A DNA stretch of 64,000 bases, taken from sequence record MT939492.1. One strand, 5' to 3'. The notes under the pieces are model-generated. The model had not been told where the DNA came from. It worked only from the letters and a program-made list of their open reading frames with translations, and ran no database searches. Below are positions 35,606 through 45,819 of the stretch, in pieces. Position 1 is the first letter of the stretch, and every line of letters begins with the position of its first letter. Made by a program: the position numbers and the translations under genes.

Positions 35606-36802
35606 ATGACCAAGCATTACGTTGGAACCAAGATCATTCAGGCCTACCCGTTGGGTCGTGAAGACAAGCCGGGCTATGGCGTTCAGTATCCGGACGGGTA
35701 CAGCTCCTGGTCGCCGAAGGACGTCTTCGAAGAAGCCTATGTCGAAATCGGTGTCATCCCGGCAGGCACTCCGGACTTCGTCCAGCGCCTGGTCGGTGAG
35801 CGCGCTCAGTTGTTCGATCGCTACAACAAGTTGCTGGCCTTCTCCGTCGCTACCAAGCACAACGAAGAGCACGAAGGTCACCAGCAGTTGGAAGGCGACG
35901 AGCTGTCCGACATCGAAGACCAGCTCGAAGCGATGCGCACGTACATGCACGTGCTGGACCAGCGTATCCATCGTCACGGGTTCATTTTCCACGACACCGG
36001 TGTCCTGTTCACGCTCAAGCAGGCTGAAGCCGAGAGCCACGTTCGTACCGAATGGGTCATCGCGCACATCATCGCCAAGTGCGAGAAGGCCGGCGTACTG
36101 CTGGACATCGCCGCGTCCAACACCCTGCCGAGTGAAATCGCTGCTGATATCCAGCGCATCTTTGGGGTGAACAGCAAGGTCAGCTGCCGCTTCGAGAAAG
36201 ACTACTGGACCATCGACGTTGAACTGCTGGAACCGTACCAGAAGTTGGAACATCGCTTCGTCTTCCGTTACCTGGAATGCTACCACCGCGTGGTTGCCAA
36301 GGATATCGGCGAACGACTGGATCGGGCGTTCTGCACGGTACTGAAGGCCGGCAACGCTCCCAACGACGTCGTGTTCATGAGCTACCTGACCGACAACTTC
36401 GACAAGCTGGTATCCGGCAATCTGAACGTATCGGCTAAGGTTGACGGCCGCAGGATCAACGGCGACTGGATCCTCCACGTCCCCTACAGCGATGACCTGC
36501 TCAAGGGCGAGACCTTCCACTACAAATTCAGCCGCTGGAACAACGCCTGGAGCTTCACCAGCGAGAACTCGCGTCAGGATCGCTTCAAGCGCGCACTGGA
36601 TGCTTTGATGCTGTTCCCGCTGAGCGTGGTCACGGCGATCTACAACAAGCTCGATGAGAGCAGTGCTAGTGTCTACGAACACGGCCCGACGCTGCATAGC
36701 GAGCAACGTGGTGCTCGCCTCGTCTTCAAGGATGAAGCTCTGGAGCGACTGCGACAGATGCTCGCCGCTGCTGCTGAGCGTATCGGTGAGGTCAAGGCAT
36801 GA
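35606..36802 (+). CDS. Multidomain phage protein (YVGTK..SWSPK domain + crAss001_48-like helical domain + unknown C-terminal domain)
   Basis: YVGTKIIQAYP...GY.V.YPDGY.SWSPKDVFEEAY, then QRLVGERAQL...KL..F...Q..AM..Y..VL..RI. Confidence 0.6.
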   Translation: MTKHYVGTKIIQAYPLGREDKPGYGVQYPDGYSSWSPKDVFEEAYVEIGVIPAGTPDFVQRLVGERAQLFDRYNKLLAFSVATKHNEEHEGHQQLEGDELSDIEDQLEAMRTYMHVLDQRIHRHGFIFHDTGVLFTLKQAEAESHVRTEWVIAHIIAKCEKAGVLLDIAASNTLPSEIAADIQRIFGVNSKVSCRFEKDYWTIDVELLEPYQKLEHRFVFRYLECYHRVVAKDIGERLDRAFCTVLKAGNAPNDVVFMSYLTDNFDKLVSGNLNVSAKVDGRRINGDWILHVPYSDDLLKGETFHYKFSRWNNAWSFTSENSRQDRFKRALDALMLFPLSVVTAIYNKLDESSASVYEHGPTLHSEQRGARLVFKDEALERLRQMLAAAAERIGEVKA

Positions 36803-37515: not shown

Positions 37516-37521
37516 GAGAAC

Positions 37522-37558
37522 GGGAGGGGCTTCGGCCCCTCCCTATGCTTTTTTTTTT
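37522..37558 (+). terminator. Hairpin + TATGC + T10
   Basis: GGGAGGGGC-TTCG-GCCCCTCCC-TATGC-T10. Confidence 0.8.
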
Positions 37559-37625
37559 GTCCGGTTTTCTGCCCACTATATGGGGCGCTTACGCCCATCT
37601 TTGCAGCTAACCGGGATCATGGCAA

Positions 37626-38500: not shown

Positions 38501-38935
38501 ATGTTCTTCGGTCTTTTCAAAATGGTGCTGGCCCTGGCTGGTCTGCTGTTCACCGGTATGGGGCTGTTCGTGTTCTACCAGGTGTTCATTGCCGAGAAGG
38601 ACGAACCGATGGATCGGTCCAATCGGATCAACCATCTGCGTCTACTGTGGTTCGTGCTGACGCGCCCTGAGCTGTTCGTCAAATCGTTCCCATGGCTGCT
38701 CAAGGACGAACTGGAGAATGTCTCCAAGGCCGACGGCACGGACCATGGTTTGTTCTCTGATCAGAAGGCGGGCAACATCGTTCTGGTGGTTGATGACGAG
38801 GATACCAAGGAACTGATCCTGCGTACATCACGCTACCTGCACGACAAGGCCAACGTCGATACCGACTACGAGGTGGTGAACCATCTGTGCCATCTCTACC
38901 TGGCACCGCACCTGATCGAAGTTCGCAAGCCCTAA
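38501..38935 (+). CDS. Membrane-anchored hypothetical protein
   Basis: 144 aa, N-terminal TM, RBS AAGGAG. Confidence 0.65.
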   Translation: MFFGLFKMVLALAGLLFTGMGLFVFYQVFIAEKDEPMDRSNRINHLRLLWFVLTRPELFVKSFPWLLKDELENVSKADGTDHGLFSDQKAGNIVLVVDDEDTKELILRTSRYLHDKANVDTDYEVVNHLCHLYLAPHLIEVRKP

Positions 38936-38937
38936 AG

Positions 38938-38977
38938 GGCATAAATGCAGGAGAGGGGAGACCCTCTCCTGTATGCC
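38938..38977. terminator. GGCATA-hairpin-TATGCC
   Basis: GGCATA..CAGGAGAGGG-GAGA-CCCTCTCCTG-TATGCC. Confidence 0.75.
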
Positions 38978-38999
38978 GCAAAATGTCGATTCCACCGAA

Positions 39000-39017
39000 T
39001 TTCAACCCTATATAACT
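39000..39017 (+). promoter_or_regulatory. Candidate phage early promoter motif
   Basis: TTTCAACCCTATATAACT. Confidence 0.5.
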
Positions 39018-39073
39018 CATCTGAGGTTCTACCTTAAAGACCTCATTCCTTTCAAACTCAATGGAGAAACATC

Positions 39074-39280
39074 ATGGCAAACGCCAAAGCAAACACCACC
39101 AATGTCGCCAAGCGTCGCATCGCTCCGGCCAAGAAGCCCTTCATCAAGCGTCTGGGCACCGCTGTTGTCGAAACGGCCAAGGACAAAGATGTCCAGCTGA
39201 TCGTCGGCGGTAGCTTCGCCTTCGCAGCTGCCATCATCGGTACTGCGCTGGTGATCGAGAAGTTCACCGACCGCAGCTGA
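39074..39280 (+). CDS. Small basic protein with C-terminal TM helix
   Basis: 68 aa, RBS GGAG; TM LIVGGSFAFAAAIIGTALVI. Confidence 0.6.
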   Translation: MANAKANTTNVAKRRIAPAKKPFIKRLGTAVVETAKDKDVQLIVGGSFAFAAAIIGTALVIEKFTDRS

Positions 39281-39355
39281 TCCACCCTGTTCCAAACTGA
39301 GCCGTCATGTCGGCGGCTCTTTCATTTCCCTTCCTTTAAATGGAGTAATACGAGT

Positions 39356-40408
39356 ATGACCAAGAAAGCAATTGAAAAGAAGAACGTCGCTGCCACCGAA
39401 AATACCGCCGAGTACTACGAGCTGATTGCCGAACGCAAGAGGCTCGTCAAGCGCGTCAAGGCACTGAAGGATGCCGGCAGGTCGGTTCCGGACAGGCTGC
39501 GCCACAGAATTGCAGAGCTCAAGCGCCTGACCAACAAGTCGTCCATCCACCCGAGCACCAAGTCGCGGTCGAAGGTGCAGGAGATCCTGACCAAGGGCGC
39601 CAAGCCATCGCCGGAAACCATCAAGAAGGTGACCGTCGCCTCCACGACCAGCATCGCTGATCTGGCGAAGGAACTGGGCATGCGCCCCAGTGGACTGGTC
39701 AGTCGTCTGTTCCGTCACGGCACTACCGCCGTCTCCGCAGACCAGCTCGGCTCGGTGAAGGGTATCGTCAAGATCCTCAACGTGATCGGCGAAAAGGAAG
39801 GCTTCGAGGTGAAGCTCGATGACAACCTCGCGGCAGTGAACCGTCTGGTTGGCGCATTCGACGTCGCTACCCGCGATCGTCGCGTCAAGCCGGTGGAAAA
39901 GGAGCTGACCCCGATCGCCATCTCCCCGCGTGCTCAGATCAACGATCTCGCCGAAAAGCTGGGCATCAAGAACGGCACCCTGGTCAAGCACTACTTCGCC
40001 ATGGGAAAGCCGGTCAGCATTTCCCAGACCGTGGCATCCGGTGGTCGTCGTCGTGCGCAGGAGATCGCCAAGACCTTGGGCTTCCAGCTCACCTTCCTCA
40101 CCAAGGGCAAGGCTGCCAAGAAGGTCTCCCAAGTCGCCGGTGGTCTGACCCTGCGCCAGCTGGAAGAAGAGATCTTCAAGGTCGACAGCATTCGCGTGAT
40201 CTTCCGCGCCTCCCCGAGCCAGCGTTCCGGTGTGAAGCAGTGGATCCAGAAGATGCCGGAGAACTCCACCATCTCCGACCTGTGCAAGCGTCTGCGCAAT
40301 GCCAACAGCGAGCTGGCTGAAATCGCCCTGACCCTCATCGACGGTGACGGCAATTCCTACAGCTCCAGTGCCAACCAGCGTCAGCGTCTGGACTACCTGA
40401 CTTTCTAA
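39356..40408 (+). CDS. Lys/Arg-rich protein with two IF2 N-terminal-domain-like repeats
   Basis: Repeats TSIADLAKELGMRPSGLVSRLFRHG and AQINDLAEKLGIKNGTLVKHYFAMGKPVSISQ...AQEIAKTLG resemble the IF2_N consensus. Confidence 0.65.
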   Translation: MTKKAIEKKNVAATENTAEYYELIAERKRLVKRVKALKDAGRSVPDRLRHRIAELKRLTNKSSIHPSTKSRSKVQEILTKGAKPSPETIKKVTVASTTSIADLAKELGMRPSGLVSRLFRHGTTAVSADQLGSVKGIVKILNVIGEKEGFEVKLDDNLAAVNRLVGAFDVATRDRRVKPVEKELTPIAISPRAQINDLAEKLGIKNGTLVKHYFAMGKPVSISQTVASGGRRRAQEIAKTLGFQLTFLTKGKAAKKVSQVAGGLTLRQLEEEIFKVDSIRVIFRASPSQRSGVKQWIQKMPENSTISDLCKRLRNANSELAEIALTLIDGDGNSYSSSANQRQRLDYLTF

Positions 40409-40444
40409 GCAGTACCCACCAACAATGCGTATAAGGAGATAGCA

Positions 40445-40885
40445 GTGGACGTTGGTGTTTGTGAGAAGGTTGTTCCTCAGACTCGTGAGTTCTACGTGTC
40501 TCATTCGTTTGAGGGCAACTTGTACTTCAGAAGCCTCATGTGCCGAATGGTCAATGAGCCTGTACTGAAGTTGACGTGTGAGATCCCCGCGCTCGGTTTG
40601 CAGCATGCCGACCGTCACGGGCAGATCGACGTCATGAAGTTCTGTACTTTGAAGAAGTTTGAGCACAACGGTCTGAACGGCTTGGAACTGGGCGCCCTGC
40701 TTGGGGTGCTCAGTCCTCGCTGCATATGCCCTGAACTGCTCGACGAGCTGCCTGCGACCGTACTGAACCATGTACTGATCGAGGACGAACGGCTCATCAA
40801 GGTTCCAGGACGTCACTGGGCTGAATACCTGATGGCTAACTACCTGGCGGTAAGTTGGCCGAAGGAAAAGTTCATCGGCTCCTGA
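40445..40885 (+). CDS. Hypothetical protein
   Basis: 146 aa, GTG start, RBS AAGGAG. Confidence 0.55.
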   Translation: MDVGVCEKVVPQTREFYVSHSFEGNLYFRSLMCRMVNEPVLKLTCEIPALGLQHADRHGQIDVMKFCTLKKFEHNGLNGLELGALLGVLSPRCICPELLDELPATVLNHVLIEDERLIKVPGRHWAEYLMANYLAVSWPKEKFIGS

Positions 40886-40926
40886 TCCAAGAGTTGTATC
40901 TGGCTTTACTCTGCTGTACCATGTAT

Positions 40927-40950
40927 GGCGGAGGTAACCCCTCCGCCTTT
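40927..40950 (+). terminator. Hairpin + TTT
   Basis: GGCGGAGG-TAACC-CCTCCGCC-TTT. Confidence 0.65.
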
Positions 40951-40976
40951 CTTAATACCCCAATGGAGATTCACGT

Positions 40977-41510
40977 ATGTCCGATTTCACCGCTACTTTG
41001 GAAATCAGCCGTGCCAAGGGCACGTGCCACCGCTCGGGCCGCATTCTGATCCTGGATAAGGACACGCATCACTTCGCCCACGTCCTTTTTGACCTGGATC
41101 CGATGAACTACGAAGACCGCGACGATCGTCGTGGCGCGTTCACCATCCAGGAGATCTTCTCCAACGTTCGCAAGAACAACTGCCCGGGCTGGTTCGGCGA
41201 CTTGGTCGGTCTGGTGATTACCAAGCTGTTCAACTGCCCGAACTTCAAGGCTGACCACGACATCACGCATGAGGAAATCCTCCTGCTGGTGGCTCAGCCC
41301 GATCACGACTTGGTGCATCAGGCACTTCGTAGTGATGCTCAAAAGTTCCTCGCTGATCCGAGTGAGGAAGGTAACGAGGAATATCTCCTGCCCTCCTCCT
41401 CGTTCGACTACCTCATCAAGGACGAGCCTCGTATCGTCGACCCCGTCGATGTTCTGGAAGTCGGCGAGTACGAGGCTGTACGGGTTCTTGACCTGATCGG
41501 CGGGAAGTAA
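40977..41510 (+). CDS. Hypothetical protein
   Basis: 177 aa, RBS GGAG. Confidence 0.65.
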   Translation: MSDFTATLEISRAKGTCHRSGRILILDKDTHHFAHVLFDLDPMNYEDRDDRRGAFTIQEIFSNVRKNNCPGWFGDLVGLVITKLFNCPNFKADHDITHEEILLLVAQPDHDLVHQALRSDAQKFLADPSEEGNEEYLLPSSSFDYLIKDEPRIVDPVDVLEVGEYEAVRVLDLIGGK

Positions 41511-41835: not shown

Positions 41836-41899
41836 TTTGCTACACCTTCAGGCTTATTATCTGTACAAGTCAGTGTGCACTGCAGCTCCTCCGATATCC

Positions 41900-42100
41900 C
41901 GAATGTAAGCACGGCCATGCGTGCTGATCATCTATCCCGTTCGTGCACGGGAAAGCTCTGTAGGGAGAGCCATAATCGGAGTCCAAGCGCAGCACATACC
42001 CTGCTTCATCGCCCCACCTCGCGAAGGCCTACTTGCTCGGGCTGAATCGAATGCGGCGTTGTTGCCTGACTCTTCCGCTAGGTTGGGGTGGCGGTTTATT
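41900..42100 (+). ncRNA. Candidate structured non-coding RNA (unassigned)
   Basis: Hairpins at 41908-41925, 41936-41951 and 41955-41970 plus a long stem 42009-42019/42080-42091; no credible CDS; terminator-like hairpin at 42112. Confidence 0.35.
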
Positions 42101-42111
42101 CTAAGCATATA

Positions 42112-42141
42112 GCCCACTCCTTCGGGAGTGGGCGTTATGCC
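42112..42141 (+). terminator. Hairpin + TATGCC
   Basis: GCCCACTCC-TTCG-GGAGTGGGC-GT-TATGCC. Confidence 0.7.
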
Positions 42142-42175
42142 CTTTTCTTTCCAGAAGTACCACAATGGAGTTTCA

Positions 42176-45714: not shown

Positions 45715-45722
45715 CCAGCTAG

Positions 45723-45751
45723 GCAGGGGGCGAAAGCCTCCTGCTCTATGC
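45723..45751 (+). terminator. Hairpin + TATGC
   Basis: GCAGGGGGC-GAAA-GCCTCCTGC-TC-TATGC. Confidence 0.7.
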
Positions 45752-45819
45752 TGTCAAAAATGAAATCTGGGGTTAGTGCTATGTACTAACCCTTATCCAC
45801 TTTGGAAGAGCAAGTCCAA

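Follow-up and report, generated by a model that had tools for sequence, protein, structure and literature searches.

Two predicted IF2_N-type repeats in Xoosp14_51, a strongly basic protein of Xanthomonas phage Xoo-sp14 that may target the ribosome

Gene 51 (Xoosp14_51) of Xanthomonas phage Xoo-sp14 occupies positions 39356-40408 on the plus strand of the window analysed here, i.e., a stretch of 64,000 nucleotides from record MT939492.1, and encodes a protein with two repeats that resemble the N-terminal sub-domains (N1 and N2) of the bacterial translation initiation factor IF2. The 1053-nt region of the gene matches the Xoo-sp14 genome (232,104 bp) at 100% and at the same coordinates. The open reading frame (ORF) is intact and gives a product of 350 amino acids with an isoelectric point (pI) of 10.2, which is annotated as 'hypothetical protein' and sits within a long series of hypothetical genes on the plus strand. 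The protein is rich in basic residues (64 lysines and arginines vs 36 aspartates and glutamates, net charge about +28), and its linkers are rich in Lys and Arg. On the minus strand, an ORF of 503 aa (39305-40816) was dismissed as a high-GC shadow of gene 51, because the homologues, the domain matches and the synteny all lie in the plus-strand frame. Xoo-sp14 and phage LucasX are listed among the chimalliviruses in a figure legend of a preprint on nucleus-forming phages. The genome announcement of Xoo-sp14 contains nothing functional on Xoosp14_51, and nothing was found on this protein in the literature.

Repeat 1 spans residues 89-155 (39620-39820, plus strand) and contains the motif LGMxPSGLVSRLFRHGxT, and repeat 2, the closest match to IF2 N2, spans residues 184-250 (39905-40105, plus strand). 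These limits agree with those of the initial annotation of this DNA, which had placed two repeats at about 39620-39815 and 39914-40100, had likened the second of them to N2 and had described a basic helical N-terminus, a separate C-terminal domain and the lack of a GTPase domain; all of these points were borne out by the results given below.

On scanning the whole protein against Pfam, it was found that IF2_N (PF04760) was the sole family to pass its cut-off, with 45.9 bits (E = 4.8e-12; gathering cut-off, 25.3 bits) in two stretches. Repeat 2 scanned alone scored 29.8 bits, with residues 195-226 aligned, and repeat 1 scanned alone scored 21.3 bits, under the cut-off, with residues ~95-130 aligned. 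The orthologues P0003 and P0005 gave 29.2 and 29.5 bits, respectively. Across the family, 11 of the 14 repeats matched IF2_N, the next family being HTH_10 (5 of 14). The two repeats proved to be homologous to each other when the alignments of repeat 1 and repeat 2 from the orthologues were compared by hhalign (probability 95.9%, E = 6e-9, 63 columns).

A profile of the 14 repeats from the whole family (A3) was searched against all PDB sequences. Its best match was the N2 sub-domain of Pseudomonas aeruginosa IF2 (259-320; E = 3.3e-7), which aligned with profile positions 2-68 of 69; further matches were E. coli N2 (E = 0.009), the N/G1 region of T. thermophilus IF2 (E = 0.15) and E. coli N1 (1ND9; E = 0.49). 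When the PDB was searched with the single sequence of repeat 2, IF2 alone was found (E = 0.008), and the narrow profiles of the individual repeats gave marginal matches (E = 0.07-0.13). A genome scan for the IF2 of the host, Xanthomonas, yielded sequences from Pseudomonadaceae only. Comparison by hhalign with 59 distinct N2 sequences from these Pseudomonadaceae gave 97.0% for all repeats together, 94.6% for repeat 1 and 96.0% for repeat 2 (32% identity), over 59-62 columns. It was also observed that the similarity to N2 is not limited to the helix-turn-helix (HTH) but takes in the GxPV(S/T)I(S/N)Q strand as well as the helix and the strand that close the domain, and the IF2_N alignment spans the whole beta-alpha-alpha-beta-beta-alpha-beta unit, so that the similarity is one of entire domains.

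Structure prediction led to the same relative. In a full-length AlphaFold2 (AF2) model, built from a five-sequence alignment, repeat 2 was predicted with a local distance difference test score (pLDDT) of 74-84 and consists of a strand (185-189), three helices (195-202, 206-215 and 231-240) and a second strand (243-247). The top PDB match found by Foldseek was 7UIU, which contains IF2 N2 on the 30S subunit (probability 1.0, template modelling (TM) score 0.61 on the target), and the second was IF2 in 7UNV (7unv_x); an N1/N2-like fold was thereby recovered in an AF2 model of modest quality. The possibility that the repeats would turn out to be a generic HTH with no IF2_N match was not realized in the Pfam scan, the profile searches or the structure prediction. 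It is therefore very probable, from these comparisons, that the repeats are genuine domains of the IF2_N type, homologous to IF2 N1 and N2 and closest to N2, and by its sequence Xoosp14_51 belongs to the IF2_N domain family, within which its architecture is new. The only mention of IF2_N/PF04760 in phages that was found in the literature is an IF2_N label on one diversity-generating-retroelement target gene.

As in the N-domain of gammaproteobacterial IF2 (7UIU, 1ND9), two copies of a small domain are joined by a charged linker, and it is to N2 that the repeats are closest in both sequence and predicted fold. However, they are only ~26-32% identical to N2, and the last helix region of each repeat is longer; moreover, in the phage protein they are joined to a helical hairpin at the N-terminus and to a phage-specific domain at the C-terminus, and the G domain, domain II, C1 and C2 of IF2 are missing. 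The Pfam scan gave no match to GTP_EFTU or any other GTPase family, and no match to the C-terminal part of IF2, i.e., the C1/C2 domains that bind formylmethionyl-tRNA (fMet-tRNA), was found in the Pfam and NCBIfam scans. The NCBIfam equivalog for IF-2 (TIGR00487) reached 18.1 bits, its cut-off being 424.4, and covered residues 187-244 only. Judged by its domains, Xoosp14_51 does not qualify as an IF2, since both the G domain and the tRNA-binding domain are absent; without the G domain, domain II, C1 and C2, it cannot serve as an initiation GTPase or as an fMet-tRNA binder.

The remaining parts of the protein differ in how widely they are conserved. The N-terminal basic helical hairpin (residues 15-61; 39398-39538, plus strand) is made up in the AF2 model of helices 15-39 and 46-61, with a pLDDT of ~80-86 and a pI of 10.4; it is confined to the close orthologues and is missing from the remote homologues P0006-P0011. 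A basic linker motif between the repeats, AFxxATRxRRVK (residues 167-178; 39854-39889, plus strand), is conserved among the orthologues and, in the form AFxxATRxRRV(K/R), is kept even in P0007 and P0011, which are remote homologues. The N-terminal 87 and the C-terminal 101 amino acids, scanned as separate pieces, gave no significant Pfam family.

The C-terminal domain (residues 263-350; 40142-40405, plus strand) has no Pfam family of its own and belongs to the chimallivirus-specific family phrog_10601, which was matched with E = 1.6e-5 by the full protein and with E = 2e-6 by the domain alone; nine of the ten family members gave this match. Modelled alone with AF2, the domain reached a pLDDT of 81 and a predicted TM score of 0.73. 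Neither its fold (best E = 0.59, weakly ubiquitin-like) nor its sequence led to a significant relative in the PDB. Structural matches in BFVD, all with probability 1.0 and TM scores of 0.66-0.71, were found among small, uncharacterised gene products of Erwinia phage Ea35-70, Serratia phage Yaphecito and Erwinia phage Stratton. The 88 residues share with the other phrog_10601 proteins the motif (L/I)E.(E/Q)I(F/L)...(I/L)R(V/I)(V/I).R, with a basic tail before it.

The distribution of both kinds of domain across jumbo phages was checked. The C-terminal domain occurs in several groups of chimalliviruses; it stands alone in the Ea35-70/RAY group (96 aa; Ea357_128 = RAY_129) and in the Xanthomonas phages LucasX (LUCX_248, 115 aa) and RTH11 (WJJ55077, 133 aa), and it was also found in jumbo phages of Salmonella, Serratia and Klebsiella. 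Erwinia phage Stratton gp76 (354 aa; L013 3218-4282) carries two copies in tandem. A hidden Markov model (HMM) of the domain, A4, recovered Stratton gp76 (two copies), LUCX_248, the RTH11 protein and Ea357_128 with E values of 1e-24 to 1e-41, a recovery that is consistent with membership and not independent of it, as the alignment behind A4 already contained these sequences. In contrast to Xoosp14_51, no IF2_N repeats were found in the stand-alone (96-133 aa) or tandem phrog_10601 proteins of other chimalliviruses; hence, as far as the sequences go, the fusion is lineage-specific, a chimallivirus core domain having gained one to three IF2_N modules. Some side observations were made on these genes. 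The gp76 gene of Stratton lies two genes, and Ea357_128 seven genes, downstream of the gene for dihydrofolate reductase (DHFR), and in RTH11 the copy follows ribonucleotide reductase at a distance of three genes. In the LucasX paper, LUCX_248 is named in the text as a dUTPase (PMC9009655), and in GenBank LUCX_248 (L012 3929-4276) is the 115-aa hypothetical homologue of the C-terminal domain; the discrepancy is probably a numbering mismatch.

Close homologues of the entire protein are few. Among 5.8 billion proteins, four were found (50-90% identity), all on metagenomic jumbo-phage contigs with conserved gene order, and six remote homologues of 113-428 aa came to light when 1.84 billion representatives were searched exhaustively with a profile. 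A further candidate, P0012, was rejected as spurious, with a Pox_A32-like repeat. The element common to the remote members is the C-terminal ~90 aa, and the number of IF2_N-like repeats varies from zero (P0009) through one (P0007, P0008, P0010 and P0011) to two to three (P0006). Among cultured phages, megablast and tblastn searches with the whole protein, P0008 and P0011 returned Xoo-sp14 itself only, and scans of IMG/VR with the C-terminal domain and repeat 1 yielded nothing beyond that lineage and a single contig of 324 kb. By these searches the family of Xoosp14_51 is tiny and metagenome-derived, with the C-terminal domain, alone or duplicated in other chimalliviruses, as its conserved core, and only the Xoo-sp14 lineage, with a few metagenomic relatives, shows this core fused to IF2_N repeats.

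The surroundings of gene 51 were compared with those in related contigs. Gene 50 (Xoosp14_50; 39074-39280, plus strand) encodes a protein of 68 aa and pI 10.4 that is basic in its N-terminal half, has one hydrophobic helix at the C-terminal end and gave no family match. In all Xoo-sp14-type contigs (L002-L004, L008) gene 50 immediately precedes gene 51, and its constant adjacency to the gene with the IF2_N repeats suggests that its product may be a membrane-anchored partner of Xoosp14_51. Gene 52 (Xoosp14_52) is annotated at 40547-40885 on the plus strand, and this start looks too short; the gene probably begins at the GTG at 40445, which has a strong AAGGAG site 7 nt upstream and gives a product of 146 aa (40445-40885). 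In the same set of contigs, gene 52 always follows gene 51 after 36 nt and is 146 aa long; this is its length in the gene calls of three related contigs, and the spacer of 36 nt between the two genes shows 86-94% conservation. Co-transcription of genes 51 and 52 is probable, because the gap is 36 nt and holds no terminator, and would proceed either by read-through from the conserved element at 39000 or from an unrecognised start. The unit is ended by a conserved hairpin that resembles an intrinsic terminator (40927-40947, plus strand; -16.7 kcal/mol, z = -3.6). Apart from Xoosp14_45, the ten neighbouring genes have no annotated family. In Xoosp14_45 (35606-36802, 398 aa), residues 56-123 match the crAss001_48-related domain PF21825 (E = 1.3e-14), a family named 'Sequestin' in a precomputed table.

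The non-coding DNA here was found to be better conserved than genes 50 and 51, as the intergenic segments flanking genes 51 and 52 are 79-94% identical vs 68-72% for the coding sequence of genes 50 and 51. Upstream of gene 50, the motif TTTCAACCCTATATAACTC (39000-39018, plus strand) is invariant in four relatives, including ones whose gene-51 proteins share only 50-60% identity, and it is a candidate promoter or regulatory site. The initial annotation had called it a promoter motif and had assigned gene 51 to the unit behind it. A conserved non-coding element does lie there; however, it occurs once in the window and for this reason does not qualify as a promoter consensus, CTATAT is not enriched, no sigma-70-like site was found, and a terminator-like hairpin stands between it and gene 51. 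This GC-rich hairpin, which is followed by a T-rich tract (TTTCATTT; 39299-39319, plus strand), lies between genes 50 and 51 and could be a terminator or an attenuator (-14.6 kcal/mol, z = -3.96), and its stem and flanks are invariant in the relatives. Just downstream of TTTCAACCCTATATAACTC is an inverted repeat, TGAGGT...ACCTCA (39022-39045, plus strand), with conserved arms and an unexceptional fold (z = -0.66). Rfam gave no match in 38800-41200.

Two further observations concern the intergenic DNA of this region. GC-rich hairpins at 37516-37560, 38936-38990, 40915-40950 and 45715-45760 carry TATG(C) immediately before or after them, as in ...CCCTCCC-TATGC-TTTTTTTTTT and ...CCTCTCCTG-TATGC, and from the sequence this pair could be a candidate terminator combined with a start motif for a phage RNA polymerase. 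At 41836-42175, 340 nt without an annotated gene contain the hairpin GCCCACTCCTTCGGGAGTGGGC, and a gap of similar length is present in the related contigs.

What the repeats might do can be approached through IF2 itself. The N2 sub-domain of IF2 docks on helix 16 (h16) of the 16S rRNA, on the shoulder of the 30S subunit, and so anchors the factor; in P. aeruginosa the contact is made by the Ser277-Val278-Lys279 turn between the first two helices, by Arg259 and by a tail in the minor groove (PMC9192638). N2 was also found on h16 in the 30S initiation complex of E. coli, near uS4 (PMC12820379). In repeat 1 of Xoosp14_51 the equivalents of the contact residues are Lys90 and Gly108-Met109-Arg110, of which Lys90 is invariant and Arg110 is present in four of the five orthologues, and the motif LGMxPSGLVSRLFRHGxT is nearly unchanged among orthologues with an overall identity of only 50%. 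In repeat 2 the corresponding positions are Thr185 and Gly203-Ile204-Lys205.

The protein can thus be described as a modular, strongly basic, predicted nucleic-acid-binding protein, composed of a helical hairpin, two IF2_N repeats, basic linkers and a C-terminal domain that, among the sequences searched, is found only in nucleus-forming jumbo phages. The presence of two domains of the type that anchors IF2, together with a domain specific to a phage family, suggests that it may be a ribosome-targeting factor. The initial annotation had read the gene as that of a ribosome- or 30S-binding mimic of IF2 that could modulate the initiation or restart of translation; the homology behind this reading is upheld by the comparisons above, and its functional part is a proposal. 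It is proposed tentatively, by analogy with N2 and at a likelihood somewhat short of even, that the repeats tether Xoosp14_51 to h16 on the 30S shoulder. They would act as RNA-helix-binding modules that dock on h16 as IF2 N2 does and would carry the C-terminal domain, which is phage-specific, to the small ribosomal subunits of the host in the cytoplasm, where the two modules could compete with the N2 anchor of IF2 or act near the mRNA entry site; as an outcome, initiation would be biased during infection. A more elaborate version, which on the same analogy is conceivable and on balance somewhat unlikely, would have the phage take the anchoring module of IF2 without its GTPase and fuse it to an effector, giving an h16 decoy or tether that displaces or modulates N2 or places the effector at the mRNA entry site, so that initiation is reprogrammed for exported phage mRNAs.

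A precedent for such targeting exists in chimalliviruses, which direct early proteins to host ribosomes, among them PHIKZ014 of phiKZ, the only chimallivirus for which there are data on co-sedimentation with ribosomes (PMC10914614). PHIKZ014 likewise belongs to a nucleus-forming jumbo phage, and the same kind of takeover of host translation is proposed here for Xoosp14_51. The two proteins have no sequence relationship, however, and PHIKZ014 is reported to bind host ribosomes in a stable complex and clusters with 50S proteins (PMC10914614), whereas the site proposed by analogy for Xoosp14_51 would be the 30S shoulder; PHIKZ135 and PHIKZ216 are reported to cluster with 30S proteins (PMC10914614).

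Several observations weigh against the 30S tether. phiKZ has no homologue of either domain: HMMs A2, A3 and A4, which cover both domains, gave a best E value of 0.15 against all six-frame ORFs of its genome. The published co-sedimentation lists for phiKZ are not applicable to Xoosp14_51 for this reason. The full-length AF2 model has a low confidence (pLDDT 60.7), and repeat 1 reaches only ~60. In repeat 2 the basic residue of the contact turn is not kept (K, K, G, T and T in the orthologues), and in repeat 1 one orthologue has Cys at the position of Arg110. Furthermore, the first two helices of the repeats are also HTH-like, and HTH-like domains of phages mostly bind DNA.

The last two points lead to the reading in which the HTH cores bind double-stranded DNA and the protein is a transcription regulator or a phage-genome-associated factor, probably inside the phage nucleus. 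The repeat cores gave weak matches to HTH_10, TetR_N, HTH_3 and HTH_24, and those of P0008 to LacI and MerR; the segment LAEKLGIKNGTLVKHYF of repeat 2 locally resembles the HTH of TetR, and the profile of repeat 2 matched a TetR HTH with E = 0.07 over 32 residues, where it is locally equal to IF2. The strongly basic character of Xoosp14_51 would suit such a role, and the nearby conserved non-coding motifs could be operators. However, every HTH match remained under its Pfam threshold (HTH_10, 20.4 vs 23.1 bits; HTH_3, 17.8 vs 23; TetR_N, 14.1 vs 24; LacI for P0008, 22.2 vs 27) and spanned only ~20-30 residues, whereas IF2_N passes its threshold and is aligned across the whole domain unit, including the flanking strand-helix-strand elements, which fit IF2_N and not TetR. 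Moreover, no DNA-binding HTH in the PDB matched the family profile A3 better than E = 0.2, and rRNA is the sole documented ligand of the IF2_N fold. DNA binding is considered unlikely on balance, and it is nonetheless a serious rival to the 30S tether.

Binding to an RNA other than 16S rRNA, such as phage mRNAs or the hairpin in the leader of gene 51 itself, would make the protein an mRNA chaperone, a tether between mRNA and ribosome or an autoregulator that acts after transcripts have left the phage nucleus. This would be in keeping with the contacts that this fold makes in IF2 to an RNA helix and its minor groove, with the basic linkers, including the conserved ATRxRRVK, and with the strongly conserved hairpin directly upstream of gene 51, in intergenic DNA that is conserved above the coding sequence of genes 50 and 51. 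Nothing specific points to any RNA partner, however, and the hairpin resembles an ordinary intrinsic terminator with no match in Rfam, so that this explanation appears unlikely, although it too is a serious rival. That the repeats are mere scaffolds in a protein-protein adaptor or structural protein, with a C-terminal domain whose role is unrelated to nucleic acids, would agree with the unclear role of the N1 sub-domain of IF2 itself, with a family core that occurs without repeats (P0009, RAY_129, LUCX_248) and with the weak ubiquitin-like character of that core, but it is highly improbable given a net charge of about +28 with Lys/Arg-rich linkers, as is typical of nucleic-acid binders, and the near invariance of the stretch of repeat 1 that matches the nucleic-acid-contacting turn and helix.

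In nucleus-forming phages, transcription and translation take place apart, and the exported phage mRNAs have to gain access to host ribosomes. To our knowledge, PHIKZ014 is the one ribosome-binding protein of these phages that has been characterised so far. The assignment of the repeats of Xoosp14_51 is solid, and the proposal of a 30S tether is simple, cheap to test and directly testable. The repeats indicate that IF2_N-type domains have been recruited by viruses outside IF2, and even if the protein binds DNA or mRNA, it would provide a first handle on phrog_10601, which is present in several chimallivirus groups and not detectably in phiKZ. A phage protein that docks as IF2 does would also be a natural probe of the contribution of the IF2 N-domain to initiation, which is itself poorly understood. 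If the anchoring module was indeed taken from IF2 to act on h16, Xoosp14_51 would be the first viral mimic of the docking domain of an initiation factor; as a 30S tether it would represent a second route by which nucleus-forming phages reach host ribosomes, via the small subunit.

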